Origin: Macrostomum lignano
Lineage: Eukaryota
Assembly (NCBI GenBank): GCA_002269645.1
Contig: NIVC01000927.1
Span: forward strand, 62,001 to 126,000
Length of the DNA: 64,000 nucleotides
Direction of reading: 5' to 3'
The position numbers and the translations under genes are program-made. Of this stretch, positions 1 to 52,930 are shown in pieces (the first letter of the stretch is position 1; each line of letters begins with the position of its first letter). The notes below the pieces were generated by a model. It was not told the DNA's origin. It ran no database searches and was given only the letters and a program-made list of their open reading frames with translations.

Positions 1-890
1 GAGGTATACAATAATGGTAGATTGTGTATATGGTTTTGGAGGTAGACAATAATGGTAGATTGTGTATTTGGTTTTGGAGGTAGACAATAATGGTAGATTG
101 TGTATATGGTTTTGGAGGTAGACAATAATGGTAGATTGTGTATATGGTTTTGGAGGTAGACAATAATGGTAGATTGTGTATATGGTTTTGGAGGTAGACA
201 ATAATGGTAGATTGTGTATTTGGTTTTGGAGGTAGACAATAATGGTAGATTGTGTATATGGTTTTGGAGGTAGACAATAATGGTAGATTGTGTATATGGT
301 TTTGGAGGTAGACAATAATGGTAGATTGTGTATTTGGTTTTGGAGGTAGACAATAATGGTAGATTGTGTATATGGTTTTGGAGGTAGACAATAATGGTAG
401 ATTGTGTATATGGTTTTGGAGGTAGACAATAATGGTAGATTGTGTATTTGGTTTTGGAGGTAGACAATAATGGTAGATTGTGTATATGGTTTTGGAGGTA
501 TACAATAATGGTAGATTGTGTATATGGTTTTGGAGGTAGACAATAATGGTAGATTGTGTATATGGTTTTGGAGGTAGACAATAATGGTAGATTGTGTATA
601 TGGTTTTGGAGGTAGACAATAATGGTAGATTGTGTATATGGTTTTGGAGGTAGACAATAATGGTAGATTGTGTATTTGGTTTTGGAGGTAGACAATAATG
701 GTAGATTGTGTATATGGTTTTGGAGGTATACAATAATGGTAGATTGTGTATATGGTTTTGGAGGTAGACAATAATGGTAGATTGTGTATATGGTTTTGGA
801 GGTAGACAATAATGGTAGATTGTGTATTTGGTTTTGGAGGTAGACAATAATGGTAGATTGTGTATATGGTTTTGAAGGTAGACAATAATG
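1..890 (+). repeat. 38-bp satellite (GAGGTAGACAATAATGGTAGATTGTGTATATGGTTTTG)n, G/T-rich strand
   Basis: Direct 38-bp periodicity, ~23 units visible, truncated by the window edge. Confidence 0.98.
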
Positions 891-2386
891 ATTAATTTTT
901 CACGATCGTGATGAAGCCACATAACTATACTTCTACACCTAATGCTGAATTTTAATGAAATAATTATATTATCTATCGCAGTCCTACCTAGGTCGTGAAA
1001 AACTTTAAAAATAATTTTGTAAACACTAATACCGTAATTATCGATAGTGATAAGTCACTAATGCACTTTCATTTTGGTTCTACAACAACTAAGAGCTAAC
1101 TATAATTACAAAACTTTGACTACAGAAAAGAAAAATTAACCAGAGTTCCAGACAGAAATTATTTAATCAAGTCCAACATTTCAATTTAATTAAATAGATT
1201 ATGTAAGCAACAAGTTGTAGATCGAATTTTTATATTTATGTATTTTTTAATAGCTAGAAGCGTTAATAGGTAAGCTAAGCTGACCTTTTTGTTGAGTTCA
1301 ACCGCAGCAGCAGCAGAGACAGCCAGAAGAAGAAAGCAAATAATTGCTTTAACAAGCACAACCGATTAGAAAATTCTGAAAACCCGAAAGCAAGCTTGAA
1401 CAAGGCTCTGACGAACTAAGCTATTTAAGATAAAACACGAGACAAAATATACATAGCGGAGATAAACAAACAATAAACAATAAAACTAAAGTTCTATTAG
1501 AAGATTCATCACAAAATGTACCGGTGCCTTACATTTCATACCTAAAGCCTTTTTAGGTTCAATCCAACAGTACAAAAGTACCAAATTAGCAATAAAAAGT
1601 ACACAGTGTACTCAATTGACCAGATTGGAAATTAAAATGTCTCAAATAATTATTATTAAATCGTATTTCGCAGCACTAATTCAAATTTGTGACTCTAAGA
1701 GTTTGAACATTGAATAATTGAGGATTAATGCGAGAGAAGTTAAAACATTTTAAAAAACAAGCCATTTAAGTGCGCGTTTAAAAAGGCGCGATTCCTCGAT
1801 ATCAGCAAAACTATAACAAAATTAGATCGATATTGATTGAAATATTTCTACTGATTAAATCGTATACTCGTGTATTTATAAAAGACGGTTTAAACACAAT
1901 TTGTGAGAGTTGAAAACGTATGACAATGCAGTTCACCTGTCACTCAAGTGCGGGAATGTGATCAAGTTAATTATTCATAACCGTAACTTAGCTTAGGATA
2001 TTGTGGGATATTTGTGGACTAATAGGGACAAAAGCGTAAGGTTGACCAATAAGATTGGCTGTGACAGATTCACGATATTTATTCAATATTTTAACCAAGC
2101 ACTATAATTATACCAATTACATAACCTAGTTATAACAAACATATTAGAGACAAGCAAGCATCAAACTACTCAACCATTCATAAGTTTTGTTGCATAAATT
2201 TGGCATGAGACTACTGTGATTTTCACATGGTCTTCTGTATGTCTGTTATGATAAAATAATAAGAAGATGATACCTAAGATTCAGGTGTAAAACTCACTTT
2301 CAGAGTGCTTTAAAAATTATCTGATTATTATTGTAATCCACTTATTTTTCCTGTAACTTAAACCTGAGTTTCCACTACAACCCACT

Positions 2387-3131
2387 CCTGATGTCACCGT
2401 AACTTCTCCTGATGTCACTGTAACCTACACCTGATGTCACTGTAACCTACACCTGATGTCACTGTAACCTACACCTGATGTCACTGTAACCTACACCTGA
2501 TGTCACTGTAACCTACACCTGATGTCACTGTAACCTACACCTGATGTCACTGTAACCTACACCTGATGTCACTGTAACCTACACCTGATGTCACTGTAAC
2601 CTACACCTGATGTCACTGTAACCTACACCTGATGTCACTGTAACCTACACCTGATGTCACTGTAACCTACACCTGATGTCACTGTAACCTACACCTGATG
2701 TCACTGTAACCTACACCTGATGTCACTGTAACCTACACCTGATGTCACTGTAACCTACACCTGATGTCACTGTAACCTACACCTGATGTCACTGTAACCT
2801 ACACCTGATGTCACTGTAACCTACACCTGATGTCACTGTAACCTACACCTGATGTCACTGTAACCTACACCTGATGTCACTGTAACCTACACCTGATGTC
2901 ACTGTAACCTACACCTGATGTCACTGTAACCTACACCTGATGTCACTGTAACCTACACCTGATGTCACTGTAACCTACACCTGATGTCACTGTAACCTAC
3001 ACCTGTCACTGTAACCTACACCTGATGTCACTGTAACCTACACCTGATGTCACTGTAACCTACACCTGATGTCACTGTAACCTACACCTGATGTCACTGT
3101 AACCTACACCTGATGTCACTGTAACCTACAC
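2387..3131 (+). repeat. 22-bp minisatellite (CCTGATGTCACTGTAACCTACA)n, ~34 copies, just downstream of the guanylate kinase stop
   Basis: Period 22 (CCTGA at 2408 and 2430); near-perfect units. Confidence 0.97.
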
Positions 3132-3205
3132 CACCGGACTTTGCTGTAAACCAACCCTGAGGTTACTGCAACCTACTATAACAGCAGTCTCCCTGTAGCT
3201 CTCAA

Positions 3206-4881
3206 TCAGCTTGCGGATGCTTTGACTGCCAATGCGCGGGCCACGTCGTCGGCCAGAAATTTGTCCAACTCGGCGAAAGCGGCGTCCAGATTATCGTTGA
3301 CAATCACGACGTCGTAGGCGCCGGCCTGATCGGCGTAGGCGTTGCCAGCCTCGGCTTCGGCCAGACGGAGGCGGATTTTCTCGTCGTCATCTGTACAGCG
3401 GGCTCGGAGTCGCTGCTCGAGGTCTGTCATGCTGGGCGCTTTGATGTACACGTAGGTTGGCGGCGGCTGCAGCTTGGCGGCTTTGAAACTCTTGACGCCC
3501 TGTGGCGATTAGGAATTCGGTACGGTTCTCAGTTGACGGCACGGGTAGTATATTATGCTACAATAATCATATAGGCCACTCAGAGCACACAGGAGGCACT
3601 CCGCCAAAACTGAGGCCCAGGCCAGTTCGTTTCCTTACTATATGCAGATGCACAAGATTTTCGATAATTCCGGGATAGCAAAACCGACCTTGAATCTTTA
3701 AATCCATTTTAAGGCTAATGGGCTGGGCTGGGCTGGTCCGCCAAAGCCCGATGAAAACGTTATAGAGGCCAAGAAGCGTCCCGGAGTCACTTGTGTAGCC
3801 ACAGAGTCGTTTCAGACGCGCTGCAGATGACACAGGTCCAACAGGAAAGAAGTGATTCTAGCATTTTCTATTCGCCCGGAAATGACGATCCAGCAGTCTG
3901 TTTAAGGCCGGTAGTAACGACTCTGTAACGCGTCCAGAACGCCTCAGAAGTGACGCACTGACGCAGACAATATAAAACGTTTCAAAGTGATTGTGGGGCG
4001 ACTATTTGACGACTTTTTGGCGACTTGTACCGTAACATCTTGTTGTTTTAGAGTCGTTTAGAATCGCTTCTTTCCTGTCTGACCTGTGTCATCTGCAACG
4101 CGTCTGAAACGACTCTGGAAGCCTCAGTTGGGGGAGTCACTTCCGTCTCAAGCGTTCCCTTTCTGAGCAGGCACACGGGCGTGTGAGACTAAAAACTAAA
4201 AGAAAACTTTCCATTTTTGCGAATTAATGTCAATTTAGACGTAATTATGTATATCAGCTAGCTAATTTAAACTGGCATTTCGTATGCTTAAAATGGTTCA
4301 TTGCCCTAAAACTATAAATACCAGTGAAAAATAAGTTACTAATGCAATATTTGTTTTAACTTATATATAAGATATTCTCAAAAACGCTGTTGTAAACGCA
4401 CATTGAATTTGTATTACTGAGTACGTTAAATGCCACTTGCGCAGCCGAAATTGATAAATCTTAAAAGCAATAACAAATCAGTATTAACACCTGAACAAAC
4501 CTGCACATCCACATCTAGCACGGGAATTTGTCCGCTATTGATAACATCCGTCACGGCTTTGTAACTGGTGCCATAGCGGTTGCCGGCAAAATGGGTGGAC
4601 TCAATAAACTTGCCGGCGTCAATGTCAGCCAGCATCTCGGCCTCGGTCACGTACCAATAGTGCTGGCCGTGCTTTTCGCCGGCTCTCGGCTGTCTGGTTG
4701 TGTGCGACACGCAGAACCGAAAGCAGCCGGGATGACGCTCCATCAGATGCTGGATTAGTGTAGACTTGCCGCTGCCGCTAGGCCCGCTGAATACAATTGG
4801 CCGAATGCCAGTTGATGCCGACATTGCTGCAATCCTTCTGCTGCTGCTCACAATGCCGACAAAGGAGATTGGCAAGCGCAT
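3206..4881 (-). CDS. GUK1: Guanylate kinase, two exons: complement(join(3206..3499,4501..4881)), 224 aa
   Basis: P-loop SGPSGSGKST, VSHTTRQPR, FIESTHFAGNRYGT and LDVDVQ|GVKS joined across a phase-0 GT..AG intron; LEQRLRAR and YDVVIVNDNLD in exon 2. Confidence 0.93.
3803..4116. mobile_element. MITE/foldback-like dispersed repeat in the guanylate kinase intron (58-bp inverted arms 3803-3860 and 4059-4116)
   Basis: Arms match 54/58 by eye; related sequence at ~4930-5045 and 62845-63065. No TSD identified. Confidence 0.6.
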
Positions 4882-5604
4882 CAATTTACAGATTTATGAG
4901 CAGAAATATCAGTTTATGTTACCTCGCCCCAGAGCGTTTCAGAGTTGTTAAATTACAACTCTAAAACCACAAAATGTCACGGCACAAGTTTCTAAAAAGT
5001 CATCTGAGTCAATATGAGGCGTTTTATTGTTTGCGACTCTGGGGCAACAGAGAGAATGGTATCTGAGGCGTGCTAGAGTTGTGTATAAAACACATATGCA
5101 TCACTTTATGAGTTAGAATCACATAGGCATTTTTAGCACTCTTTTATGATTTTAAAACTCATGTGATGCATTGGTGACTCAAACAGTTGCCTCTCTATTA
5201 CATAAAATCAATTGAGTTGTTAAAAATTCACAAGAGTAGTAATAGAAAATTACTTACATACTCCAATTTTCAATTGCAAAACAAGTAGTAAGGTACCCAT
5301 CAGAAATTCTACTATGCACATACCACATTTTCCCATTTCAAATCAAATAGTAAGGTACCAAACCAGCTGGAACAGGGTATTCTACAGGAATTCTCAATAC
5401 ACAGTTTACACTGCCTGCCCCACAAAGAACCCAAAAGAAAAGACCTCACACACAAGAATTAGAAACAATACAAACTCCCATTTTGGCAGTTTTATTGGCA
5501 ACCTTTTCCATTTCTGTATATGTCCACTTTTTTAATAATTAAACATATTTGAATTATATTGAGGAAAATATAATACCTTAAAGAAATTTAAGAAATTTAA
5601 TTTA

Positions 5605-6010
5605 AGGCACCTACACACAAGGGTAAAGGAGCATTGTACAAGAGCTAGCACTGTGTACGACCACCTCCTGATGTGCAATCAATGTGCCAAAGTTAGAAAT
5701 GCTGAGAAATTTGAAATTATTGATCATAATTGCCAGAGTTTTAAGTTGTCTACTCTTGAGGCATTGTACATTAAACAGCTAAAGCCTACCATGAACATCC
5801 AACTTGGTGGTAGAGGGGCGAGTGTCCATCTAAGGGTGTTCTGACCCCATGCACTTGCCTCTTATTTAGGGCCATCTAACTCAGTTACCCATACTTACAA
5901 TCTTTTTGGCCTACTAGACTTTAAAAAATTACCATCTTTCTGAAACTATATTATTGCCTTGCCTGAAGATGCCAATTTTTCGGCAAAACATGTCGCGCAA
6001 AGATTGATTA
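5605..6010 (+). mobile_element. 3' fragment of a Penelope-like element: C-terminal half of a GIY-YIG endonuclease plus 3' UTR with a degenerate hammerhead motif
   Basis: Frame reads RHLHTRVKEHCTRASTVYDHL...KFEII...KLSTLEALYIKQLKPTMNIQ, matching the R.L..R..EH ... F.I ... EAL.I...P..N pattern of PLE GIY-YIG domains; CTGAAGA..AAAACATGTC at 5963-5994. Confidence 0.75.
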
Positions 6011-8155
6011 ATAAATTATAATTTCATAATTTTGTATTATTAAAGATAAAATATGAATGTTCGCCTTTGCTTTCATTTTCCTGACTTTCCTGAAAGAAAT
6101 AATTTGAATTGAATTTTATGAACTAAAATATAATAGGCCAAAAGAAATAAAAAGTTTACAATTAACATTCACTGATTGAGAAGGCCATCACTGCCAGAAA
6201 AGAGGCCGGTAATTTTAAGATCCTTGGTATATTTAAGCAAATAAAATGAAAAAAAACAGTCACTTGTCCTTGGTGAGCACCCCAGCTCCAGGGCTTGTAT
6301 ACTGCAGAGAGAAGATGCAGGACATTAATACCCAATCAAGAAAGGATTTTGTTAAACAAAAAGCTTAACACTTGCTTATTTCCTCTCACATATTGCTGGG
6401 CTAACTCTTTCATTATGTTTCCTTTATCTATACTTGGTTATTTTAGGATATATGAATGATTGTTAAGACAAGATTAGAAAAATTGGAGGTCTAACTATAA
6501 GGGAAAGAGGATTGGATTGTGTTAGGAACTGCTAAAATTGTGCCATGCAATATAACTCCCATTGTGTTTTGAGAATTCCTGTAGAATACTCTATTCCAGC
6601 TAGGCTTAGTTTAGTACTTTTCTATTTGATTTGTAATGGAAAAATGTATTAGACACATAATAAAATTCTTAGCAAGTACCTTACTACTTACTTGTTTTGC
6701 AATCAGTAGTAGTAATAAAAATTACATATACTTATATATTCCAGTTTTCAATTGCTAAGCAACATAACTTTTATTCCTACTATAAACATACAATGTAAAT
6801 CTTTATATTTCACTGATGTTTAATATATATCTTTTTTCAACTGCAGAGTTGGTAGTAAGCAAATTATTAATATATAGTTTAATTGTATAAAGTTGATAAT
6901 GGTATAGGCTTTTTGGCACTATAAAATGTATGATTCTCTATCTCTCTTTTTTTCTCTTGGCTTTACTCTAAAATAATAGATATGATTTCATTGCAAGCTA
7001 GCTTGGTTACAATTTATTGCTCCTAGATTCTTTTGTGTATCCTTTTAAAAAGATTTACCTTTTTATATTATTTATTAGTTCTAATCAAAAATAATGTTTA
7101 TTAAGTTTTTAGTTTTTTTGCACTTAATTTTGATTGCCTTAGGCCTTGGTTTTTTTAGCTGTAATTGTGATTGTAATGTAATTGTAAAATTTTGTAATTT
7201 TTATCTATTTATTTTCTTTTACATTGCAACTTACTCTCCATTTACAGCCTTGATAGTCATAATGTTGACTATAGCAGCAGCAAAAAATGTTATTCAGTAC
7301 TATTAGCAATGATAGTGCTCTAGCTACCATATCTTGAGTCTTCCTGGTAGCTGGTGCTAGCTTGTATAAGGAATCATGCATGAATCATGAATTGGAATCA
7401 TACATTTAGACAGCCTGACAAAAAGGATTGTAAGTAACTAATATTCACTTTATTTTAATGTCCTTTAAAATTTAATTTTTTTTTATTAACATGACATTTT
7501 TGAAATAAACCTTTTGTCTTCCATGTTTTCTATACATAATTGTATGATTTCTTTCTTATACCATGTAACTTGAAAAAAAAGCTAAAAATTTATTATAAAT
7601 TTATAACCTACTCCAAATTTTTCTATTGCTATACTTTTTTATTCCTTATTGTGTTCATACCCAGATTTTCCCTGTGTAAAGTCTAAAGCTGTGTAAAGGG
7701 TTAATGTTTTCTCACTGTTGTAGTGTAGTGCTTAGAATGTTAATTTATTGAGTTTAAAATGAAAATAAATCCCAGTCACTGTTCAAATGAAAAATTTTGC
7801 AATGTAAAAAGCATTAAATTATAAAGAACTGCTCTTTGCTAAATATTAAGGGGATCTCAGTTAATCTATAACTATGTGACTGATTTAAGAAATGTAATCT
7901 ATAGGCTAAATGGGCCTATACTACAAGATTTTTGCACATTATTTAATGGTAAGACTGGATGGGCAGGGATTGGGGTAATAAATATATAACTGCTTGAAAC
8001 TAATCTATTGTTGTGATATACAGGCCTAATAGGCCTAGTGATTTGTTCATTAGCAAGCATATATCAATATTTGATGCAAAAAACCAGAATAATCTTGATA
8101 GTATTTATATTCTTATTACTACTATTAAGACTACCAAGATTAGCTTACAAAGGCA

Positions 8156-8624
8156 CCATAGTCAGGAAAGTGGCACAGCATGTGCCGGAATAATTTTTTT
8201 GGGACAATCTGCGTGCCATCTATGCACCATTTGTATACCATCTGTGCGCCATGTCTGTGCCCTTATTTTATATATTTTATGTAATTTACGTTTTTTACAT
8301 AAATTACATATTTTATAACAAATTTACAAAATTCTTAGAATTCATACAGACTCAATATGCTATACCAGTTTTGTTAATAAAGATTTGATTTTGATTCCTT
8401 ATGCACCAAAGTTGTGCATAGCATCGCATATGTCAGGGACCTTATCTTATGCGCCGCAATTATACACCACATGCGCTAGCCGCTAGGGACCTCAGTGTGC
8501 GCCGTGATTGTGCGCCGCATGCGCCAGGGACCTCAGTATGCGCCATGATTGTGCACCAAGTGCGCCAAGGACCCCTTGTATGCGCTGGAATTTTCCATGG
8601 CAAAGGCCACCTTCCTGACTATGG
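8156..8624. mobile_element. 469-bp MITE with 19-bp TIRs and an 8-bp TSD (hAT/P-type TSD length)
   Basis: TIR CCATAGTCAGGAAAGTGGC (8156-8174) vs reverse complement of 8606-8624, 18/19 match; CAAAGGCA at both 8148-8155 and 8625-8632; internal GCGCC motif repeats. Confidence 0.88.
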
Positions 8625-11144
8625 CAAAGGCAAAGTAAGAAGTACCAAGTCAGCTTTATCTTACTAGGCCTATGAATCTTAGTAGGAATCTTAGTAAGAT
8701 TAAACATTTTACCATTATTAATATGCTAGATTTTATTAAGATAAGTTAGATAACTATAGGGTGTTGACTAGGAATGATATATATTGAGTAAAATTTTGAA
8801 ACCCTTGGCCTTCACCAAAAAGCTACCTTTATGCCTAACTGAAATATTCATTTACCAAAATATCTATCTATCCTGTAGCACGCAAGCGCAAAGTGCGGCA
8901 TGGGGGATTTGGTGAGGGGGTGGCGCAACTCAACCCACTGGTGGGAATTAAAGACATTGCTTAACTTTTGTGCCCGTGTGACAGCGTGAGTGGGGGGGAG
9001 TTTTAGCTGTCACTGAGTATATATCAAAAACAACTAAAGGGCCTGTAGTGCAATATTGTAAGGTAGATAGTAGAGGAAGGGATGGGTGATAGTAGGTTTA
9101 AGTTTGGAAAGTGAGTTTGAGTGATTTTAATTAAAGAAATGAAATATGTAATATACAAAGGCAAAGCTTTTTTATTTGTGTATATATCTAGGCCTATATA
9201 TAATTATAAAAAGAATTTAAAGTCTTCCAAAGTCTTTGGTAAGCCTAAAGTCAATTTTATACTTTGCTCTAAAATTATGTATTCAAAAGTTATAATAAAA
9301 TCATTAATAAATATTTGCTAAAGCTTTTTACCAAAAATATATAACCAAAATAAGCCTTTTAATTTTAATAATAGATACCAATTTTAAAAGTATTGAAAAT
9401 ATTTGAATATATTTGAATATAAAGAAGATTTGAATATATTAAATTATGAATATTTAGAATATAATATGAATATATTAAATTTGACTATATTAAATATTTG
9501 AATATATTAAAAATTTGAATATATTTTGTGAAAATACATATACAACACCTAGACCTAGTAGATCTGGTTGATCCAGATCTTTAAAAAGTTGCTAGCTAGC
9601 CAAAGTAAGTTGCAAAATTAGGCCTAGTTCTTTCCAGAACCAATAAATAGAAAAGGCAACAAAATAGTAAAGAAAAAGGAAAAAAGAGACAATAAAAAGG
9701 GGGAAATGAAGTTAAAACTAGATTATTAGAAAAAGAAAAATATTTACACATGTTTTAGGGTTATATTGTACCAAATACCATATACTAAATGTTGTCTTAC
9801 AAAAATATGTCATATTTGCCTAGTCAATAGAGAAAGTTGAAATATACTAGATACATATTTATTATTTAGCAACTTCTAAAAAGGAAACTAATTTAAAATT
9901 TAACCAAATTTCAATAAAATATTTAGGTATCATATTAATAAGATAAGCAAATATAAAAATATAGTAAATTTACCTTCTTAGAATATGCAAAGATCATGAC
10001 TAATGCCATGTCATTATATGTAAGCTATGTATTAGGACTATGTGATTAAGCTTTAATGTGTAATACTATTAAGGATTAATGATTTTAAAGTCATATTGAC
10101 ATTTATTAAGGATTTTTAAGCAATCAATAGGTTTTTAACAATGAGTATAAGTATTAAGTCATAAATGTATCTTTGAATGGCATTATGTTTAAGCCAATGT
10201 TCTTATATATAGGTTATCTTTTTTGTTTTTCTTACTTTAGAGACATTGGTCATCTGTGCAATTGAATTAATCAACAACATTAACATATAGATATAGAGCC
10301 AGGGGGACATTTAAGACTTTAGACAACTTGGTAGTACAAAAAAGACCATTTTGCTTTTGTGTTAAGCAAAATAACTTATACTTTTTGTTCTTGAGAGCCT
10401 ATATGGGATGGCCATAAAAAGGCAAGACTAGAGTGGCTTCATTGAAATCTTTATAGCAATTGCCAATAGAGGTTAAGTAGGTTGGATAGAGGTTAGTCAG
10501 TATGTTTTTTTAATCAGTTGACCCAAGTATTGCAGACAATTGAAGCTTTATAGAGCATGTGTACAATAAGATCAAAAGATGAGTTAAGCCAGATACAAAG
10601 TGTAAAAGCTAAGGTTAGGGATGATATTTCCCTTTGATTAAACTCAAATTTATATCTAATTTAATTAAAATTTTGGCATCTGGGTCCAAAGTTAGAATGC
10701 CAAAATTTAATTTGATATGTCTTCTTTGATTTTTTAATTAGAGGCAAAGTCTGCATGCATTCTGGTGCATGTTAAGCAAAATTGTCACACAATTCTGCCA
10801 ACTTCCCTGAGCAGTCACACAAGTGTGCAGATACATATGCAGTCATATGCACAATTAAACATGCACAGTGTTTACTGTTAGGCATGAACACTTTACTGTA
10901 CCTTGAGGGTTGGCCATCAAGGCCGTTAATTGCACGAGCAGAGCCAAGCCGAGATTCCAATTCAGCCCCAAATTAATGCGACTGCACTTGGAATCGAGCC
11001 TGGGCCGCTGGCACATCAGAGCGCCGCGCTAGACCACTAGGGCCCCTCTGTCATGTCACACACCCATGATGACACAGACAAACCTAGCAGGTACCTAATT
11101 ATTAAACTGCTCATTCTACTCCAGCTTACCTTGAGTGCAAAGCT

Positions 11145-11855
11145 ATGGTTGGCGAGTTGGAAGCTGGCAATGATAAAAAAGATGCCGCTGCCGTCGCGAG
11201 TCCGACTTCAACCAGCCTGTCGCCACTGCGTCGAACTTCCCGGGTGCGCAAGGAGCCGTATAAGTACCGCATGGCTCTAGCCGAGCTGGCTCCAGCCGCC
11301 ATCCAGCAGAGTCCAAAGTCGGCGGCTGGCCGGGGCGCCGGCGGCAGGCACCAGGCGGCGTCGGATTCGGCAGAGGCCACCGTTGCAGCTGCTGCAGCCG
11401 CCGCGGCCGCAGAATCGGCCATCCGGGCGATGAAATCCGGGCCGGCCTGCGTAGCGCCGGTCAGCTCGGACAGTTTAGTCCAAATTGGCGTCCGCTATGC
11501 CATTGGCGATGTTGTCCAGCTGAAGGACAAGCAGTCCCAGGGGGTGGCTTACTATGCTCTGCTGCGCGGCCTGCTGCAGGATCAGTACCTAACTGGCTAT
11601 TGCGTGCTCACCTGGCTGCTGCCAACTACCGCTGCCCCGCCCGATGGCAGCTTCGATCCGGCCGCCTACCTGCCCGGCCCCGACGAGGACGCGCCGAGGC
11701 CGTTGGACTCTGTCCGGTTCGTCTGCAGCCGATCGGCCATTGCTGGCCGGTTAGCATGTCGGATTCGAGCTCAGGAAATCATTGGCGGACCGTCAGGTGG
11801 GGATTGTCTTCCTTTAAAGTCCAAGACCAGTCCATATGTATATTGGCTAGATTAG
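11145..11855 (+). CDS. GATAD1: GATAD1-like protein, main exon (left copy); true start and other exons unresolved
   Basis: YAIGDVVQL..YYALLRGLLQDQY..CVLTWLLPT..FDPAAYLPGPDEDAPR..FVC resembles, from recall, the conserved C-terminal region of GATAD1. No GATA zinc finger is visible in this ORF. Confidence 0.7.
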   Translation: MVGELEAGNDKKDAAAVASPTSTSLSPLRRTSRVRKEPYKYRMALAELAPAAIQQSPKSAAGRGAGGRHQAASDSAEATVAAAAAAAAAESAIRAMKSGPACVAPVSSDSLVQIGVRYAIGDVVQLKDKQSQGVAYYALLRGLLQDQYLTGYCVLTWLLPTTAAPPDGSFDPAAYLPGPDEDAPRPLDSVRFVCSRSAIAGRLACRIRAQEIIGGPSGGDCLPLKSKTSPYVYWLD

Positions 11856-12150
11856 CAATCCATATGCATACTGGCTAGATTAGCAATCCATATGCATACT
11901 GGCTAGATTAGCAATCCATATGCATACTGGCTAGATTAGCAATCCATATGCATACTGGCTAGATTAGCAATCCATATGCATTCTGGCTAGATTAGCAATC
12001 CATATGCATTCTGGCTAGATTAGCAATCCATATGCATACTGGCTAGATTAGCAATCCATATGCATACTGGCTAGATTAGCAATCCATATGCATACTGGCT
12101 AGATTAGCAATCCATATGCACTCTGGCTAGATTAGCAATCCATATGCATA
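11846..12150 (+). repeat. 28-bp minisatellite (GCTAGATTAGCAATCCATATGCATACTG)n, ~11 copies
   Basis: Period 28 (11846, 11874, ...); the array begins at the end of the GATAD1-like ORF. Confidence 0.96.
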
Positions 12151-40885: not shown

Positions 40886-41001
40886 CAAAAGAACATTGTT
40901 CATTAATTGCATAGTTTGTTCATAAACAAAAAAATTCATCATTAAACAGCTTGATAGAATCTCGTCTGTTTGACAGTACGACCCGATCGTGTCACATATG
41001 G

Positions 41002-44000
41002 CTAATTTGTGTCAGCATTGGTCGTTTGTCGGTTAGCATCTTCAGCAAGATTACTTGTTGTTGGATGCTCATGAGTTAGCTGAATTCCGGATGATGCAGT
41101 TGAATCTTTCAGATGACTCTCTGAGATATCTACTGGTCGCTGTAGCGCTAGATGTTTCAGTATTGCAGACAGTCTGGAGTTCGCAACTCTGGGTGCTAAA
41201 AATCGCCAGTTCCTTCTGTAGCATTTACCATCAGCAGTTTGCACTTGGTACAATCGTTCTGGATCCATATGATCCCACGATTGAATTTCTGCTGGAATCC
41301 ACTGTCTCTTGTCCTTGTACAACCAGACTTGCTCTCCAGTCTCCAGTGGCTTCAAATCCCTAGCTGTACTGTTGTAGCAAATTGCGTCCTTCTTTCGCAT
41401 GGCGTTCAGTGTTTCCAAATCATTCTTCGTCCATGTTTGTTTTGGTATCAATTCCATTATTGGTACAGGTAGTTTGTACCTCAATTTCCTTCCCATCAGT
41501 AGCTCTGCTGGGGTCAGTAACCCACGCTCAATCGGAGTATTACGGTAGTGAAGCATTGCTTTTTCAAAGTCTTCATTCTTTCTCAAGAAGCATTTCACTG
41601 TTTGCACAGCTTGCTCTGCTGATCCATTGGACTGTGGATATCTTGGTGATGATGTTACAAGCGCTATCCCGCTTGATTTAGCATATAATTGGAATGCGTT
41701 GGACAAGAATGGCAGTCCGTTGTCGCATTGCAACTTCTCAGGTGTTCCGAATGTGGAGAAATATTTCTTTAATTGCAAGATAACAAACTCAGCTGTATTT
41801 GATCTTAATGGATCTGCACAAATCCATCGGCTGTATCTGTCCACTAAAACTATGAATTTTCGACCTTTAAAATCGAACAGGTCAGTCGCGCACTCTTGAA
41901 ATGGATAATCAGGATGCAGACTTTGAATGATTGTTTCTTTCTGTGGTCATAATTGGCTGCTTTGGCAGGCATTGCATGCTGCTATGTAGTTCTGGATGTC
42001 CCGACGCATCTGAGGCCAGTATACCAATCCTCTTGCTTTTAGCAGTGTTTTTTCAATGCCTTGATGTTCTTCATGAATGATGTTCAAGAATTCGTGGTGC
42101 ATGGTCAGTGGTATAAATATCTTGCTAGTTTTCATAATTAATCTGTCGTGCTTGGCTAAATCGTGACGAACATTCCAGGAAGGCTTTAGTTGTTCTGGCA
42201 ATTGGTTTCTGAGTTCCGGCCAACCCTTGCAAATGCGATTCTTGATCGCATGGCAAGTTGAATCTGCATATGTGTGTTCCTGGATCTTCTTAAGTAGGTC
42301 TTCCGGTAGACAAACCTTTTGGATACCCAAGATTTGATTCTCAAGCTCAGAGTCTATGTCACTTGCCGAATGCACGGATTGCAAGAAAGCACGGCTTAAT
42401 GTATCAGCCAAATAAAGATATCTTCCCGGTTTGTATTGCACGGCTAAGTCAAATTCTTGGATCTTGAGTATCAGACGTTGAATTCTAGCCGATAGTTCAT
42501 CCATTGGCTTCTTCATAATATACTGCAGCGGTTTGTGGTCAGACTCGACGGAGACTCTACATCCCCAGAGATACTGTCTGAACCTTCGACAGCCAAATAC
42601 TATCGCAAGCATTTCCTTCTCTATCTGGGCATATTTCTTTTGAGTGGATGTTAGAGCTGATGATGCATACTCAATGACATGTCCTTCCTGCAATAGTGCT
42701 GCTCCCAAGCCATCTTTGCTGGCGTCGACAGAAAAAATTAGGTCTTTATTCGGGTCAAACGGCGCAAGCACAGGTGCTTCGCAGAGGCACTGCTTGATTC
42801 CTTGACATACATGCGCAACTTTGGGATTCACCCGGCCGTTTCTATTGGCAACACACATATGTAAGTCGCTATTGGACAGAACAGTAGTCACGTGACTGCT
42901 CTCAGCCAATAGCGACTTATATGCGTGTGTTGCCAATAGAAACGGCCGGGTGAATCCCAAGGTTGCGCCCAAGCAAGTTCCTTGATACGCCTTTTCTTGG
43001 TCATTGGTCCACACCCATTCGGATTCTTTCTTCATGAGTTCCCTCAAAGGACTTGTCAGTGCAGAAAAGTTTGCTATGAATCTTGACAAGTAATTTGCAC
43101 TGCCAATAAACTGTTGGAGCTGCGCTTGCTTTTTAGCACACTGTTCAAAACTGTTTGGGTGCGGCATTTCTTTGATGCTGTTTACTTTTTGTGGATCTAC
43201 TTTCACACATTTGTCAGTTAGTATGTGTCCAAGAAATCGAAGCTCGGTTTTGCCAATGCTCGTCTTTTGCCTGTTCAGAGTCAGGTTCTTTTTCCTGCAT
43301 TGCTCCAAAAGATTTCAAACTGCTTGGTTGTGCTCTTCCCAAGTCTTTCCCCATACTATGATGTCATCGATGTAGTTAGCAGATTTTTCTACTTGACTTG
43401 TCACTTCTTCTTTGATGCGCCTTTGGTAAGCTTCAGGTGCATCCTTTAGACCAAAAGCTAGTCGATTCCATTTGTAAACGCCAAACGGAGTGTGAAATGC
43501 AGTAAGAAGTGAACTTTCTTGATCCAACTAAACTTGATGGAAGCCAGACTTAGCATCAAATGTTGAGAAGTATTTTGCTCCTGTCATCTCGCTAATCATC
43601 TCGTCATAAGTTGGAATGGGGTATCGATTTCTGACAATATCATCATTTAGATTCTTTGGATCTAAGCACAGTCTAATTGAGTTATCCTTCTTCCAGACGA
43701 TAACAACATTGGACACCCAATCTGCCGGCTGGTTGCATTTCGTTATTATTCCTTGGCTCTGCAAATGGTCAAGCTCTTCACGCAGGGCCTTCATAGCCAC
43801 AAATGGGACTTTCCTTGGGCCTTGGACTTTCAGTATTGCACCTTCTCTCAATGAAATGTGATGCGCTCCAGGCAGACATCCAATTCCTTCGAACACATCG
43901 CTGTATTCCTTAAAGATCGTTGATTCCGTCAGCACTTCTTTATCTGTAGTCTTTGTTACGTTGAGGATTTGAATCAGGCCTAATTTCTCAGCTGTGTCGG

Positions 44001-45170
44001 TTGCTAATACAGGTGTATTGTCTTCCTCAATGATGGTGAATTCTACTTTATGCACGGAATCTTTATGCGAGAGTCGCAATTTAATCTTGCCCTTCACATT
44101 AAGCATCTGATTGTTATACACTGATAGTCTGGTGTGGTCTTTTTCTAATGGGTTGTCTGTGATTGTTCTTAAACGTTTCTCGGACATAATATTCACATCA
44201 GCGCCGGTATCAATTTTGTAGTTGACGATGTGTCCAAACTCAGTGTCTAGCGACACAACTGTTCTTGAAACGGCTTTCACTTCATTTCCATTATAATAAT
44301 TCATAGAATATTTACTTACATCCCATGCAGCAGCTTGGTAAGAATTCGATGATTCAGTCACGTCAGTAAGCTCATCTTCAACTGTACGAATCTGTTTTGA
44401 TTGTTTTGTTTTCTCTTTCTGGCACATGGCCTTAAAATGGTTCTTTTGTCCACAGTTCAAGCAGGTCTTGCCATAGGCACTGTAGTTGGTGTGACCAAAT
44501 TTGTGGTTCTTGCCGCAGTATCTGCATGCCTGTTGTCCTGTAGGAGCCTTTTGTGTGATAGACTTGGACTTGGCTCTGGTTGATTGCTGCAACTTGTGAT
44601 CAGGGTCTTTTACAATTTGACTGACAGAGTTTCTGTTTTCACTCTTTATACCTGTCATCTGCCTGGCTTGCATCTTTGAAGCTTCAGTGGCACGGCACAG
44701 AACAATAGCCTTTTCCAGTGTCAGCTTCTCTTCCTCAAGGAGCCGTTCACGGAGTGCTGAATTATGAACCCCATATATATACTATCTGATTTCGAAGCAT
44801 GACATTGTCAATGCATTGCCTATTTTTAGGCTTTGAAAAACTGCATCGCTTTATTAACAATCGTAGCTCATTTATGAAGTGATCAAAATCTTCATGCTGC
44901 TCCTGCTTACGCATTCTAAACTTGTAGCAATCAAATGTTTCGCTATCCAGAGGAATGCAGAATTTCTTGAATTTGTCAATGATGTCTTTGTGAGCAGAGT
45001 CAGTAGAGAGTTCGAATGTCTCAAATATGTCCCTGCCTTCTTCACCAATGGCAGTCAGCAGAATCACATTCTTCATGCTGTCAGCCTCCTTGTCGCGCTT
45101 TGTGGCGGTCATGTATAAATTGAATGCGCCAATCCATTTTCTCTAGCGTTCTGACTTGGCCTCATCGAAT
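41002..45170 (-). pseudogene. Disrupted gag-pol
   Basis: Zinc knuckles CRYCGKNH and CLNCGQKNHFKAMC; protease IDTGAD; RT LCLDPKNLN, FSTFDAKSGFHQ, YIDDII; RNase H VDASKDGLGA, EKEMLA, SDHKPL; integrase HQG..CNAC, CDNG, YPQSNGSAE. Split into five ORFs by stops or frameshifts. Confidence 0.93.
42806..42977. mobile_element. Palindromic mini-element (156-bp hairpin 42813-42968) nested in the Gypsy pol
   Basis: ~63-bp near-perfect inverted arms around an AGTCACGTGACT centre; TTCCTTGA direct repeat at 42798-42805 and 42978-42985. Confidence 0.88.
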
Positions 45171-45270
45171 ACCATGGGCCCTGGAGGTCGCAGTCCAGCT
45201 GCATCGGACATGCCGCTGTAGTTGCCACCAAAAACGATGCACAAAGCAATTATCTAATTGGAGTCTTTTA

Positions 45271-45282
45271 CCTCTGACACCA
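45271..45282 (-). promoter_or_regulatory. Primer-binding site, probably tRNA-Leu
   Basis: Minus strand TGGTGTCAGAGG directly after the 5' LTR; complements a ...CTGACACCA tRNA-Leu 3' end (from recall). Confidence 0.7.
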
Positions 45283-45422
45283 TGTTGTGTGTTTGAATGT
45301 ATTAGGAGTATTTGCTCTTGGCGAGACTGGGCGCAGCCATATACCCTTTACAAGTATATTTGAGTTTGTCCATAGACAATAATTTATGCATGAATAAGAA
45401 ACTAAAGTGGCTGGCTGCCACA
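45283..45422 (-). repeat. 5' LTR (140 bp)
   Basis: Differs from the 3' LTR by 4 substitutions and 2 nt of indel. Confidence 0.96.
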
Positions 45423-45559
45423 GGCCTATTATATTTTAGTTCATAAAATTCAATTCAAATTATTTCTTTAAGGAAAGTCAGGAAAATGAAAGCAAAGGCG
45501 AACATTCGTATTTTATCTTTAATAATACGAAATTATGAAATTACAATTTATTAATCAAT

Positions 45560-45958
45560 CTTCGCGCAACATGTTTTGCTGAACAATTGGCATCTTCAGG
45601 CAAGGCAATAATATAGTTTCAGAGAGATGGTAATTTTTTAAAAGTCTAGTAGGCCAAAAAGATTGTAAGTATGGGTAACCGAGTTAGATGGCCCTAAATA
45701 AGAGGCAAGTGCATGGGGTCAGAACACCCTTAGATGGACACTCGCCCCTCTACCACCAAGTTGGATGTTCATGGTGGGCTTTAACTGTTTAATGTACAAT
45801 GTCTCAAGAGTAGACAACTTAAAACTCTGGCAATTATGATCAATAATTTCAAATTTCTCAGCATTTCTAACTTTGGCACATTGATTGCACATCAGGAGGT
45901 GGTCGTACACAGCGCTAGCTCTTGTACAATGCTCCTTTACCCTTGTGTGTAAGTGCCT
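45560..45958 (-). mobile_element. Penelope-like GIY-YIG 3' fragment, right-arm copy
   Basis: Mirror of 5605-6010 (ORF 45719-45910). Confidence 0.75.
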
Positions 45959-46683
45959 TAAATTAAATTCCTTAAATTTCTTTAAGGTATTATATTTTCC
46001 TCAATATAATTCAAATATGTTTAATTATTAAAAAAGTGGACATATACTGAAATGGAAAAGGTTGCCAATAAAACTGCCAAAATGGGAGTTTGTATTGTTT
46101 CTAATTCTTGTATGCAAGGTCTTTTCTTTCGGGTTCTTTGTGGGTGCAGGCAGTGTAAACTGTGTATTGAGAATTCCTGTAGAATACCCTGTTCCAGCTG
46201 GTTTGGTACCTTACTATTTGATTTGAAATGGGAAAATGTGGTATGTGCATAGTAGAATTTCTGATAGGTACCTTACTACTTGTTTTGCAATTGAAAATTG
46301 GAGTATGTAAGTAATTTTCTATTACTACTCTTGTGAATTTTTAACAACTCAATTGATTGTATGTAATAGAGAGGCAACTGTTTGAGTCACCAATGCATCA
46401 CATGAGTTTTAAAATCATAAAAGAGTGCTAAAAATGCCTATGTGATTCTAACTCATAAAGTGATGCATATGTGTTTTATACGCAACTCTAGCACGCCTCA
46501 GATACCATTCTCTCTGTTGCCCCAGAGTCGCAAACAATAAAACGCCTCATATTGACTCAGATGACTTTTTAGAAACTTGTGCCGTGACATTTTGTGGTTT
46601 TAGAGTTGTAATTTAACAACTCTGAAACGACTCTGGGGCGAGGTAACATAAACTGATATTTCTGCTCATAAATCTGTAAATTG

Positions 46684-48436
46684 ATGCGCTTGCCAATCTC
46701 CTTTGTCGGCATTGTGAGCAGCAGCAGAAGGATTGCAGCAATGTCGGCATCAACTGGTATCCGGCCAATTGTATTCAGCGGGCCTAGCGGCAGCGGCAAG
46801 TCTACACTAATCCAGCGTCTGATGGAGCGTCATCCCGGCTGCTTTCGGTTCTGCGTGTCGCACACAACCAGACAGCCGAGAGCCGGCGAAAAGCACGGCC
46901 AGCACTATTGGTACGTGACCGAGGCCGAGATGCTGGCTGACATTGACGCCGGCAAGTTTATTGAGTCCACCCATTTTGCCGGCAACCGCTACGGCACCAG
47001 TTACAAAGCCGTGACGGATGTTATCAATAGCGGACAAATTCCCGTGCTAGATGTGGATGTGCAGGTTTGTCCAGTTTGTTAATACTGATTTGTTATTGTT
47101 TTTAAGATTTATCAATTTCGGCTGCGCAAGTGGCATTTAACGTACTCAGTAATACAAATTCAATGTGCGTTTAAACAGCGTTTTTGAGAATATCGTATAT
47201 ATAAGTTAAAACAAATATTGCATTAGTAACTTATTTTTCACTGGTATTTATAGTTTTAGGGCAATGAACCATTTTAAGCATACGAAATGCCAGTTTGAAA
47301 TTAGCTAGCTGATATACATAATTAAGTCTAAATTGACATTAATTCGCAAAAATGGAACGTTTTCTTTTAGTTTTTAGTCTCACACGCCCGTGTGCCTGCT
47401 CAGATAGGGAACGCTTGAGACGGAAGTGACTCCCCCAACTGGGGCTTCCAGAGTCGTTTCAGACGCGTTGCAGATGACACAGGTCAAACAGGAAAGAAGT
47501 GATTCTAAACGACTCTAAAACAACAAGATGTCACGGTACAACTCGCCAAAAAGTCGTCAAATAGTCGCCCCACAATCACTTCGAAACGTTTTAAATTGTC
47601 TGCGTCAGTGCGTCACTTCTGAGGCGTTCTGGACGCGTTACAGAGTCGTTACTACCGGCCTTAAACAGACTGCTGGATCGTCATTTCCGGGCGAATAGAA
47701 AATGCATGCTCATCAACTCAGAAGTGATGCACTAAAGATTCTATAGCGACGCTAAAAAACTTATGTGACTTTTTGGCGACTTGTACCGTGACATCTCTCG
47801 TCGTTTGAGTCGTTTAGAATCACTTCTTTCCTATTGGACCTGTGTCATCTGGGGCTACACAAGTGACTCCGCGACGCTTCTTGGCCTATATAACGTTTTC
47901 ATCGGGCTTTGGCGGACCAGCCCAGCCCATTAGCCTTAAAATGGATATAAAGATTCAAGTTCGGTTTTGCTATCCCGGAATTATCGAGAATCTTGTGCGT
48001 ATAGTAAGGAAACGAACTGGCCTGGGCCTCAGTTTTGGCGGAGTGCCTCCTATGTGCTCTGAGTGGCCTATATGATTATTGTAGCATAATATACTACCCG
48101 TGCCGTCAACTGAGAACCGTGCCGAATTCCTAATCGCCACAGGGCGTCAAGAGTTTCAAAGCCGCCAAGCTGCAGCCGCCGCCAACCTACGTGTACATCA
48201 AAGCGCCCAGCATGACAGACCTCGAGCAGCGACTCCGAGCCCGCTGTACAGATGACGACGAGAAAATCCGCCTCCGTCTGGCCGAAGCCGAGGCTGGCAA
48301 CGCCTACGCCGATCAGGCCGGCGCCTACGACGTCGTGATTGTCAACGATAATCTGGACGCCGCTTTCGCCGAGTTGGACAAATTTCTGGCCGACGACGTG
48401 GCCCGCGCATTGGCAGCCAAAGCATCCGCAAGCTGA
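46684..48436 (+). CDS. GUK1: Guanylate kinase, right copy: join(46684..47064,48143..48436), 224 aa
   Basis: Same exon lengths (381+294) and GT..AG sites as the left copy; H>R and V>A changes plus synonymous changes. Confidence 0.93.
47449..47900. mobile_element. Rearranged copy of the intronic MITE-like repeat
   Basis: Mirror of ~3760-4120 with an extra or replaced segment at ~47704-47830. Confidence 0.5.
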
Positions 48437-48509
48437 TTGAGAGCTACAGGGAGACTGCTGTTATAGTAGGTTGCAGTAACCTCAGGGTTGGTTTACAGCA
48501 AAGTCCGGT

Positions 48510-48790
48510 GGTGTAGGTTACAGTGACATCAGGTGTAGGTTACAGTGACATCAGGTGTAGGTTACAGTGACATCAGGTGTAGGTTACAGTGACATCAGGT
48601 GTAGGTTACAGTGACATCAGGTGTAGGTTACAGTGACATCAGGTGTAGGTTACAGTGACATCAGGTGTAGGTTACAGTGACATCAGGTGTAGGTTACAGT
48701 GACATCAGGTGTAGGTTACAGTGACATCAGGTGTAGGTTACAGTGACATCAGGTGTAGGTTATAGTGATATCAGGAGTAAGTTGTAGTGG
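48510..48790 (-). repeat. 22-bp minisatellite, right copy, ~12 units
   Basis: Reverse complement of the 2387-3131 unit, with far fewer copies. Confidence 0.96.
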
Positions 48791-50272
48791 AAACTCAGGT
48801 TTAAGTTACAGGAAAAATAAGTGGATTACAATAATAATCAGATAATTTTTAAAGCACTCTGAAAGTGAGTTTTACACCTGAATCTTAGGTATCATCTTCT
48901 TATTATTTTATCATAACAGACATACAGAAGACCATGTGAACATCACAGTAGTCTCATGCCAAATTTATGCAACAAAACTTATGAATGGTTGAGTAGTTTG
49001 ATGCTTGCTTGTCTCTAATATGTTTGTTATAACTAGGTTATGTAATTGGTATAATTATAGTGCTTGGTTAAAATATTGAATAAATATCGTGAATCTGTCA
49101 CAGCCAATCTTATTGGTCAACCTTACGCTTTTGTCCCTATTAGTCCACAAATATCCCACAATATCCTAAGCTAAGTTACGGTTATGAATAATTAACTTGA
49201 TCACATTCCCGCACTTGAGTGACAGGTGAACTGCATTGTCATACGTTTTCAGTTCTCACAAATTGTGTTTAAACCGTCTTTTATAAATACACGAGTATAC
49301 GATTTAATCAGTGGAAATATTTCAATCAATTTCGATCTAATTTTGTTTTAGTTTTGCTGATATCGAGGAATCGCGCCTTTTTAAACGCGCACTTAAATGG
49401 CTTGTTTTTTAAAATGTTTTAACTTCTCTCGCATTAGTCCTCAATTATTCAATGCTCAAACTCTTAGAGTCACAAATTTGAATTAGTGCTGCGAAATACG
49501 ATTTAATAATAATTATTTGAGACATTTTAATTTCCAATCTGGTCAATTGAGTACACTGTGTACTTTTTATTGCTAATTTGGTACTTTTGTACTGTTGGAT
49601 TGAACCTAAAAAGGCTTAGGTATGAAATGTAAGGCACCGGTACATTTTGTGATGAATCTTCTAATAGAACTTTAGTTTTATTGTTTATTGTTTGTTTATC
49701 TCCGCTATGTATATTTTGTCTCGTGTTTTATCTTAAATAGCTTAGTTCGTCAGAGCCTTGTTCAAGCTTGCTTTCGGGTTTTCAGAATTTTCTAATCGGT
49801 TGTGCTTGTTAAAGCAATTATTTGCTTTCTTCTTCTGGCTGTCTCTGCTGCTGCTGCGGTTGAACTCAACAAAAAGGTCAGCTTAGCTTACCTATTAACG
49901 CTTCTAGCTATTAAAAAATACATAAATATAAAAATTCGATCTACAACTTGTTGCTTACATAATCCTATTTAATTAAATTAAAAATGTTGGACTTGATTAA
50001 ATAATTTCTGTCTGGAACTCTGGTTAATTTTTCTTTTCTGTAGTCAAAGTTTTGTAATTATAGTTAGCTCTTAGTTGTTGTAGAACCAAAATGAAAGTGC
50101 ATTAGTGACTTATCACTATCGATAATTACGGTATTAGTGTTTACAAAATTATTTTTAAAGTTTTTCACGACCTAGGTAGGACTGCGATAGATAATATAAT
50201 TATTTCATTAAAATTCAGCATTAGGTGTAGAAGTATAGTTATGTGGCTTCGTCACGATCGTGAAAAATTAAC

Positions 50273-52220
50273 CATTATTGTATACCTCCAAAACCATATA
50301 CACAATCTATCATTATTGTCTACCTCCAAAACCATATACACAATCTACCGTTATTGTCTACCTCCAAAACCATATACACAATCTACCATTATTGTCTACC
50401 TCCAAAACCATATACACAATCTACCATTATTGTCTACCTCCAAAACCATATACACAATCTACCGTTATTGTCTACCTCCAAAACCATATACACAATCTAC
50501 CGTTATTGTCTACCTCCAAAACCATATACACAATCTACCGTTATTGTCTACCTCCAAAACCATATACACAATCTACCATTATTGTATACCTCCAAAACCA
50601 TATACACAATCTACCATTATTGTCTACCTCCAAAACCATATACACAATCTACCATTAATTGTCTACCTCCAAAACCATATACACAATCTACCATTATTGT
50701 CTACCTCCAAAACTATATACACAATCTACCGTTATTGTATACCTCCAAAACCATATACACAATCTACCATTATTGTCTACCTCCAAAACCATATACACAA
50801 TCTACCATTAATTGTCTACCTCCAAAACTATATACACAATCTACCATTATTGTCTACCTCCAAAAACATATACACAATCTACCGTTATTGTCTACCTCCA
50901 AAACCATATACACAATCTACCATTATTGTCTACCTCCAAAACCAAATACACAATCTACCATTATTGTATACCTCCAAAACCATATACACAATCTACCGTT
51001 ATTGTCTACCTCCAAAACCAAATACACAATCTACCATTATTGTCTACCTCCAAAACCATATACACAATCTACCGTTATTGTCTACCTCCAAAACCATATA
51101 CACAATCTACCATTATTGTCTACCTCCAAAACCAAATACACAATCTACCATTATTGTCTACCTCCAAAACCATACACACAATCTACCGTTATTGTCTACC
51201 TCCAAAACCATATACACAATCTACCATTATTGTCTACCTCCAAAACCATATACACAATCTACCGTTATTGTCTACCTCCAAAACCATATACACAATCTAC
51301 CGTTATTGTCTACCTCCAAAACCATACACACAATCTACCGTTATTGTCTACCTCCAAAACCATACACACAATCTACCGTTATTGTCTACCTCCAAAACCA
51401 TATACACAATCTACCATTATTGTCTACCTCCAAAACCATACACACAATCTACCATTATTGTCTACCTCCAAAACCATATACACAATCTACCATTATTGTC
51501 TACCTCCAAAACCATATACACAATCTACCATTAATTGTCTACCTCCAAAACCATATACACAATCTACCATTATTGTCTACCTCCAAAACCATATACACAA
51601 TCTACCGTTATTGTCTACCTCCAAAACCATATACACAATCTACCATTATTGTCTACCTCCAAAACCATATACACAATCTACCGTTATTGTATACCTCCAA
51701 AACCATATACACAATCTACCGTTATTGTCTACCTCCAAAACCATATACACAATCTACCATTATTGTCTACCTCCAAAACCATATACACAATCTACCATTA
51801 TTGTCTACCTCCAAAACCAAATACACAATCTACCATTATTGTCTACCTCCAAAACCATATACACAATCTACCATTATTGTCTACCTCCAAAACCATATAC
51901 ACAATCTACCATTATTGTCTACCTCCAAAACCATATACACAATCTACCGTTATTGTCTACCTCCAAAACCATATACACAATCTACCGTTATTGTATACCT
52001 CCAAAACCATATACACAATCTACCGTTATTGTCTACCTCCAAAACCATATACACAATCTACCATTATTGTCTACCTCCAAAACCATATACACAATCTACC
52101 ATTATTGTCTACCTCCAAAACCATATACACAATCTACCGTTATTGTCTACCTCCAAAACCATATACACAATCTACCATTATTGTCTACCTCCAAAACCAT
52201 ATACACAATCTACCATTATT
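50273..52220 (-). repeat. 38-bp satellite, C/A-rich strand on +, ~51 units
   Basis: Reverse complement of the 1-890 unit. Confidence 0.98.
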
Positions 52221-52930
52221 TCAGCTTGCTTACATTTTGCCATTATTTCAGGGTGGCAAAAACAATCGCTATATTTATTCTGGGGTGCGGGCCATAGATA
52301 TATTAGGAATTGGCAACTTGCAGCAAACGAAATGAAAATCAACAGCTGAAGTCGACATACGCGTGTTCAATTGTCAGCAATCGGAAAGGCATTAAAAGTT
52401 GAAGATTCAGGCCGCTCAAAACGGCAGTTTGAGAGAACGTTTGAGAGAAAGAGAGCGATCAGGGTGGCTAGGATTACCAAGTGACGCAGTCCTCATCCGT
52501 ATGCTCCGTTAGAAAAGACTCTAAGTATTCACCGTGGTGTGGCCACCGATTGTCGCATCGTCAACTGGAAGCTCCGGCAAATGGTCCATATCACCAGGAG
52601 TTGGTCAGCCATTCGATCCTGGTGGGCCTTGGCACTCAGTTCCGATATCAGGCTTAACTCACTACTTGTCACACCGTTGAGCGAATTCACCGAAGAATGG
52701 CCCCAGTTAATGAGAGCCATGTTTAATAAGCTGAGGCGTCGGAGGTAAAGCTCTCTCTCTGTATTCCTAGCTAGCGCCTCCATGTTATTTAGGCCCCACC
52801 CCACCCCAGTCCATCAGTTTTGTCTCTGGCACAGCCTTACCAGTGCTTCTAACTTCACTATCCCAACTACCCCTCCACATCTTGCGTTTTCGCCTGTGGC
52901 TTAATCTACGCACATTCACGGTGCTGAAAC

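Follow-up and report, generated by a model that had tools for sequence, protein, structure and literature searches.

An apparent gene-bearing palindrome in the Macrostomum lignano assembly is probably two subgenome copies joined head to head across a satellite gap

The Mlig_3_7 assembly (GCA_002269645.1) of the flatworm Macrostomum lignano was produced by assembling PacBio reads into contigs with Canu and linking these contigs by SSPACE with Illumina and 454 paired libraries, and 180 Mb of it consists of non-repetitive sequence duplicated in blocks that are at least 95% identical (PMC5730564). Three-copy paralogous blocks make up 69.6% of the assembly (Zadesenets et al., Mol Biol Evol 2023, PMC10733133). 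The subgenomes they represent are S (the small chromosomes) and two versions of the large chromosome that have diverged from each other, L1 and L2; single-nucleotide polymorphism (SNP) rates are 1.91% between L1 and L2 and 2.41% between L and S, together with very large insertion/deletion (indel) differences (PMC10733133). Read depth is only three-fold in many of the four-copy blocks, which indicates redundant contigs, and scaffolds chimeric between S and L account for 36% of the assembly length (PMC10733133). The literature already describes the three-fold subgenome structure of Mlig_3_7 as well as its chimerism. Here we describe a locus on scaffold NIVC01000927.1 (404,234 bp) that takes the form of a large palindrome. 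The stretch analysed, which we call the window, covers 64,000 nucleotides of this scaffold (NIVC01000927.1:62001-126000); the locus record of the right arm corresponds to window 36693-58436 at 100%. It contains a cassette with a guanylate kinase gene and a GATAD1-like gene twice, in inverted orientation, as a left arm (copy A) and a right arm (copy B). We put at roughly 0.8 the probability that this apparent palindrome consists of two diverged subgenome copies that the scaffolder joined head to head across a gap in satellite DNA.

To compare the arms, we called arrays with Tandem Repeats Finder (TRF) and delimited the inverted segments by self-comparison of the window (Table 1). The self-comparison returned five collinear inverted blocks, in which positions 1-22005 pair with 23674-51164 at 96.5-98.4% identity, a similarity that chance could not come near to producing. 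The original prediction of a cassette of about 12 kb, present twice in inverted orientation, was thereby confirmed. It had also placed 40-bp arrays head to head on the inside, with the same junctions between satellite and unique sequence on both arms. This too is what the sequence contains: the junctions are base-for-base equal on the two arms, for the 38-bp as well as for the 40-bp satellite.

The centre of the structure, in contrast to what had been proposed, is not the 40-bp satellite but unread sequence. The only N run in the window is the gap of 614 N between the two 40-bp arrays (record 84006-84619), and since SSPACE gap lengths are estimates, this length is not a measurement. Counting 40-bp monomers by orientation gave 227 forward and 0 reverse in the left array, and 0 forward and 254 reverse in the right array. 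Each array thus keeps one orientation up to the gap, the switch of orientation lies in neither contig, and no continuous sequence leads through the centre. Because the arms are separate contigs joined by Ns, with arrays that each run in one orientation up to the gap, the inversion point was never read. No sequence bridges the gap, which lies inside non-coding satellite and affects no reading frame. Only Ns separate two contig ends made up wholly of one repeat, 9.2 and 10.2 kb of pure 40-bp satellite, as in a scaffolder mis-join. The alternative is a real large inverted duplication, in which A and B sit head to head on a single chromosome, for example MLI1, the large fused chromosome. We consider this unlikely, and the unread centre counts against it. 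In its favour, judging from how SSPACE works, the program must have found read pairs compatible with an inverted join.

The interior of the two 40-bp arrays bears on both possibilities. An ungapped comparison in register was uninformative, owing to monomer-length variants, and monomers were then coded by variant. Reading inward from the junctions, the coded arrays of A and B did not share variants in register. They did share one significant block of about 38 monomers (score 67, against a maximum of 31 in shuffled arrays), which lies 186 monomers from the junction in A, 95 monomers from it in B, and near the junction in a third copy of the locus, copy C (NIVC01000426.1). We noticed the shared order of variant monomers, a higher-order pattern, at window 20270-21750 and 27490-29050 and at about 13100-14000 of copy C locus L005. 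The array spans 3.1 kb in copy C and at least 9-10 kb in A and B. The 40-bp arrays are thus homologous but rearranged, with unequal expansion, which is compatible with an artefact and with a real duplication and decides for neither.

If the arms formed a palindrome of their own, they should end somewhere. The claim that 38-bp arrays bound the structure on the outside did not hold, as that boundary is merely the edge of the window. Upstream of position 1, the record (locus L003) continues with a NIPA-type magnesium transporter gene on the reverse strand, an annexin gene on the forward strand, a 38-bp array (-), a 710-bp spacer and a 38-bp array (+), followed by the window cassette. This order is the exact mirror of 50271-64000 and beyond, and adds at least 15 kb of symmetry upstream of position 1. 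Collinearity of the outer-flank loci L003 and L002 persists to their ends, and the symmetry accordingly extends over at least record 46745-128342, about 82 kb. Within this range the arms therefore have no defined outer boundary: they are symmetric through the second 38-bp array, the annexin gene and the NIPA gene. The fold-back anatomy originally drawn, with arms of about 12 kb bounded by the 38-bp satellite, is accordingly wrong. For a real duplication, the arms would have to be at least 37-44 kb long, with their centre in the 40-bp satellite and an age near that of the whole-genome duplication. This version is improbable to the same degree, and the lack of an outer arm boundary within the compared sequence counts against it.

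Contiguous inverted satellite arrays are nevertheless present at this locus. The 38-bp arrays lie in opposite orientations around the 710-bp spacer at 50271-54250, which is a point in favour of a real duplication. All three copies of this pair are orthologous in position. We observed it at window 50271-54250 in B, at L003 12093-16146 in A and at L004 12112-14491 in C, with array sizes of 34.7/51.2, 38.8/49.1 and 3.6/16.1 copies, respectively. The inner junctions have the same monomer phase and a common ACCATTnTT-TCAGC. A Pfam search with the reading frame of the spacer gave no match.

The inverted 38-bp pair also suggests a further explanation, namely that the join is wrong for A and B and was triggered by a genuine orientation switch in some 40-bp array elsewhere, whose read pairs were mis-assigned. 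This would account for the same-strand pairs that a head-to-head join needs, and the 38-bp satellite has just such an inverted pair, conserved in all three copies. However, there is no inverted 40-bp monomer in four arrays (about 800 monomers), and no inverted array within 6.4 kb beyond the array of copy C, where the sequence is unrelated. We therefore regard a switch elsewhere as very improbable.

Further copies of the locus were informative. Its order is NIPA, annexin, 38-bp array (-), spacer, 38-bp array (+), guanylate kinase, GATAD1-like gene, 40-bp array and then further sequence, and copy C has the same order from NIPA to the 40-bp array. In copy C, the array comprises 77.6 copies (3.1 kb) in one orientation, is free of gaps, and gives way to unrelated sequence. 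The locus thus also exists in a non-palindromic form, which shows what normally lies past the array and counts against a real duplication. Beyond the array there is an intact single-exon reading frame of 516 amino acids for a rhodopsin-family G-protein-coupled receptor (GPCR; Pfam 7tm_1, E=4.5e-15). In this region (L005 15856-22273) we also found 28-, 16/32- and 20-bp tandem repeats, and the GPCR frame is absent from the called genes.

Across 8,586 aligned columns, a fourth copy, contig D (NIVC01004908.1, 31.8 kb), departs from A by only 1 mismatch and 42 columns with gaps. Its 40-bp array is at least 9.6 kb long and has the same orientation as that of A; it is far more homogeneous, and its junction is slightly different from that of A. 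Contig D would fit a redundant copy of A. It was also considered as the continuation of A past the gap, and rejected, its variant pattern and junction being unlike those of A. The part of D that we compared (L006, NIVC01004908.1:13639-31832) duplicates the left arm from window 4267 on, with many 1-bp indels.

We next aligned A, B and C and removed gap-adjacent and misaligned columns. The filtered distances were 1.69% for A-B, 2.26% for B-C and 2.74% for A-C. The locus therefore resembles the three-copy S/L1/L2 blocks, with three collinear copies whose divergence is near the published SNP rates and which differ by large indels. A and B are probably two of the three subgenome copies (S, L1 and L2) of one locus in the neopolyploid inbred line DV1. 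By their distances, A and B would plausibly be L1 and L2, and C would be S. The three distances, the three-fold occurrence of the annexin gene and the extra contig D are all consistent with the published three-subgenome picture.

Along the alignment, the copies formed a mosaic. Over 4-8 kb of A (record 50.7-54.7 kb, the NIPA gene), B equals C (0 to 2 differences in each kb bin), whereas A departs from both at 92 sites and is 3-4% different. From 6.7 to 11.7 kb of the window it is A and B that nearly agree, with C set apart from them at 166 sites. B and C pair against A once more at window 11.7-12.7 kb, and in this final block they are about 0.8% apart. The arms are thus not mutually closest along their whole length, as concerted evolution within a palindrome would have them. 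The mosaic may reflect either exchange or gene conversion between subgenomes, or paralogous reads mixed in consensus and polishing. A real duplication gains from A-B being the closest pair overall and from a mismatch-free block at 7000-9000, which could be arm-to-arm gene conversion. Because blocks of B=C identity are also present, however, such blocks do not single out the two arms.

The differences between the arms were as originally predicted, comprising a transposable element (TE) insertion, minisatellite copy number and SNPs. Over 10,567 aligned unique bases, A and B differ by 120 substitutions (1.14%), with 80 transitions and 40 transversions. These are unevenly spread, from 0 in 7000-9000 up to 3.1% at 12-12.8 kb. 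Only the right arm carries a Ty3/gypsy long terminal repeat (LTR) retrotransposon. Its LTRs of 142 and 140 bp (TG..CA) are flanked by the target-site duplication GGCCT, and the left arm has the empty site. The LTR pair shows 4 substitutions and 2 single-base indels over 129 aligned positions, and the coding region of the element is broken into several reading frames. At 33528-34691, the right arm contains a further 1.16 kb with 151-bp repeats that the left arm lacks. Downstream of the guanylate kinase gene, the 22-bp minisatellite has 35.6 copies in A, 13.6 in B and 151.6 in C, and the 28-bp minisatellite (11831-12151 in copy A) has 11.5 copies in one arm and 9 in the other. Against a real duplication, this divergence and these large indels equal the ordinary values between subgenomes.

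Fold-back chimeric reads are a familiar cause of false inverted repeats at contig ends. A single such long read, for example from a missed SMRTbell adapter, could have been written twice in inverted orientation, although here this is close to impossible. It is ruled out by the LTR element with its own target-site duplication, the 1.16-kb block and the minisatellite copy numbers, as well as by the 120 substitutions with their 2:1 transition bias and by the separate contigs.

The scaffolding artefact that we favour probably arose in four steps. Canu built each copy as a separate contig, and each contig stopped 9-10 kb into the long 40-bp satellite. SSPACE tied the two satellite ends together by mate pairs and put an estimated gap of 614 N between them. 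With the satellite at the homologous end of both contigs, abutting them forces one flip, and the product is a 'palindrome' with paralogues as arms. The linking pairs would then not be uniquely anchored, or would stem from elsewhere.

Several points weigh against this account. A head-to-head join would need mate pairs with both reads on the same satellite strand. An array in one orientation would give no such pairs, so that either a real switch somewhere or chimeras in the library would have to be assumed. Inverted satellite arrays do occur contiguously here, as the 38-bp pair around its 710-bp spacer demonstrates. Moreover, the array pattern of contig D is unlike that of A, and D could be a separate subgenome copy. 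As the third such copy it would favour a real duplication, since a palindrome of A and B, plus C and D, would also sum to three loci.

We nevertheless favour the artefact because the arms are linked by Ns only, the symmetry passes the supposed boundary, three collinear copies stand at subgenome divergences and copy C is not palindromic. Parsimony points the same way, because A (with D redundant or polymorphic in its array), B and C are the three expected copies. A real palindrome would place D in another subgenome, yet D is nearer to A (1 mismatch in 8.6 kb) than the partner arm B is (1.1%), which is awkward. Should the join be real, the inverted duplication would exceed 80 kb, be centred on the 40-bp satellite and have arms that date back to the whole-genome duplication; it could then be a remnant of the fusions and rearrangements from which the large chromosome MLI1 was built, but this is unlikely. 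Of the two alternatives left by the original prediction, homeologues scaffolded head to head is thus favoured, and the fold-back duplication found no direct support.

Table 1. Features of the window and their coordinates (window positions unless a locus is named).
Feature	Position	Strand	Basis
38-bp satellite array, copy A, cut by window edge	1..890	+	TRF; 49.1 copies in full record
Unique cassette, copy A (left contig): 22-bp and 28-bp minisatellites, guanylate kinase, GATAD1-like gene	891..12825	+	TRF, self-comparison
22-bp minisatellite	2351-3132 (A); 48510-48811 (B); L004 15952-19289 (C)		TRF
Guanylate kinase, copy A, intact, two exons (4824-4501, 3499-3206)	3206..4824	-	Pfam
GATAD1-like gene, copy A (PAA74717), two exons, intron with 28-bp minisatellite	11145..12440	+	Protein match
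40-bp satellite array closing left contig, about 230 monomers, one orientation	12826..22005	+	TRF, monomer count
Scaffolding gap, 614 N (estimate)	22006..22619	none	Sole link between arms, sole possible place of orientation flip
40-bp satellite array opening right contig, about 256 monomers, opposite orientation	22620..32858	-	TRF, monomer count
Unique cassette, copy B (right contig), mirror of 891-12825, plus 151-bp-repeat stretch and LTR element	32859..50270	-	Self-comparison
GATAD1-like gene, copy B (PAA74718), 98% identical to copy A	33239..35655	-	Protein match
Ty3/gypsy LTR retrotransposon, 4.7 kb, copy B only	40732..45422	-	LTRs, Pfam, target-site duplication
Guanylate kinase, copy B (PAA74719), intact	46741..48436	+	Sequence match
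38-bp array, copy B, counterpart of 1-890	50271..52220	-	TRF
710-bp unique spacer between inverted 38-bp arrays	52221..52930	none	Conserved in A (99.86%) and C (97.7%)
Second 38-bp array, inverted relative to 50271-52220, contiguous sequence	52931..54250	+	TRF; mirror partner upstream in A
Annexin gene, 315 amino acids (PAA74720)	55236..56342	-	Pfam
NIPA-type magnesium transporter gene, runs past window end; mirrored upstream in copy A	59621..64000	+	Pfam

The guanylate kinase gene (Pfam E=2e-34) is intact in both arms, with two exons and 2 amino acid differences between the copies, and its protein shows 99% identity to M. lignano proteins. The left-arm gene is apparently unannotated in the record, and the guanylate kinase cluster includes a single NCBI protein, of the right-arm type. 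The GATAD1-like gene has four copies in NCBI: A in the left arm, B in the right arm, C on NIVC01000426.1 and D on NIVC01004908.1. Outside the species, its top match was a spider GATAD1-like protein (E=3e-20), with the similarity in the C-terminal part; the GATA zinc finger of the spider homologue is missing from the flatworm models. The 28-bp minisatellite lies in its single intron, which in copies B and C additionally contains about 1.2 kb of 151-153-bp repeats. The C-terminus of the copy C model differs (89% identity).

Beyond the second 38-bp array, an identical annexin protein is encoded at exactly three places, namely PAA74720, its mirror PAA74716 (record 56745-57851) and PAA83250 (NIVC01000426.1). 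Downstream of the annexin gene, window 57850-58925 is G+C-rich; it carries a 21-bp repeat (58781-58865) and, on either strand, long overlapping frames. Pfam searches with three reading frames of this stretch gave no match, and it could be a degraded repeat. An Rfam scan of the window gave no match.

As the palindrome probably does not exist, the locus should not be treated as a gene-bearing fold-back, and it offers no basis for inferring a breakage-fusion-bridge or a sex-chromosome-like origin. In polyploid or heterozygous assemblies, paralogous contigs that end in the same satellite can abut only head to head, so that a mis-join of this kind always mimics a perfect palindrome centred on a satellite. 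We flag NIVC01000927.1 of Mlig_3_7 as likely chimeric at record 84006-84619. Read as subgenome copies, the locus offers a clean three-way comparison of the pace at which subgenomes of a neopolyploid come to differ in their satellites, minisatellites and TEs.

Compared with known inverted structures, the locus shares gene-bearing inverted arms around a central spacer with the ampliconic palindromes of sex chromosomes, such as P1-P8 of the human Y. In those palindromes, however, the centre and the outer boundaries are sequenced, and gene conversion usually keeps arm identity above 99.9%. Here the centre is unread, no outer boundary was found, the unique sequence has diverged by 1.1-1.7% with indels on the kb scale, and blocks of identity are held in common with a third copy on another scaffold. 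Breakage-fusion-bridge fold-backs are likewise head to head with a short spacer or none, but their arms are identical at formation, whereas the arms here have diverged on the scale of the whole-genome duplication. On a smaller scale, the 38-bp pair (50271-54250) has the inverted short-tandem-repeat arms around a unique loop, here of about 0.7 kb, that characterize Foldback (FB-type) elements. A foldback transposon was rejected for this pair, as its outer ends lie at different monomer phases, there is no target-site duplication, and it occupies the same place in three copies.

Closer likenesses come from assemblies. In false duplications and haplotig mis-joins, as here, both allelic or homeologous contigs are kept and set side by side, and they meet at a gap within a repeat; the variants there are ordinary heterozygosity, whereas here they would be the fixed subgenome variants of an inbred neopolyploid. 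The closest systems are the S/L1/L2 blocks and chimeric scaffolds of Mlig_3_7 itself. The published survey scored chimerism as S versus L by k-mers along scaffolds and did not describe head-to-head satellite joins (PMC10733133). In other respects the locus matches these blocks, with three collinear copies at 1.7-2.7% divergence, indels of TEs and tandem repeats, an extra redundant contig and two paralogues within one scaffold.

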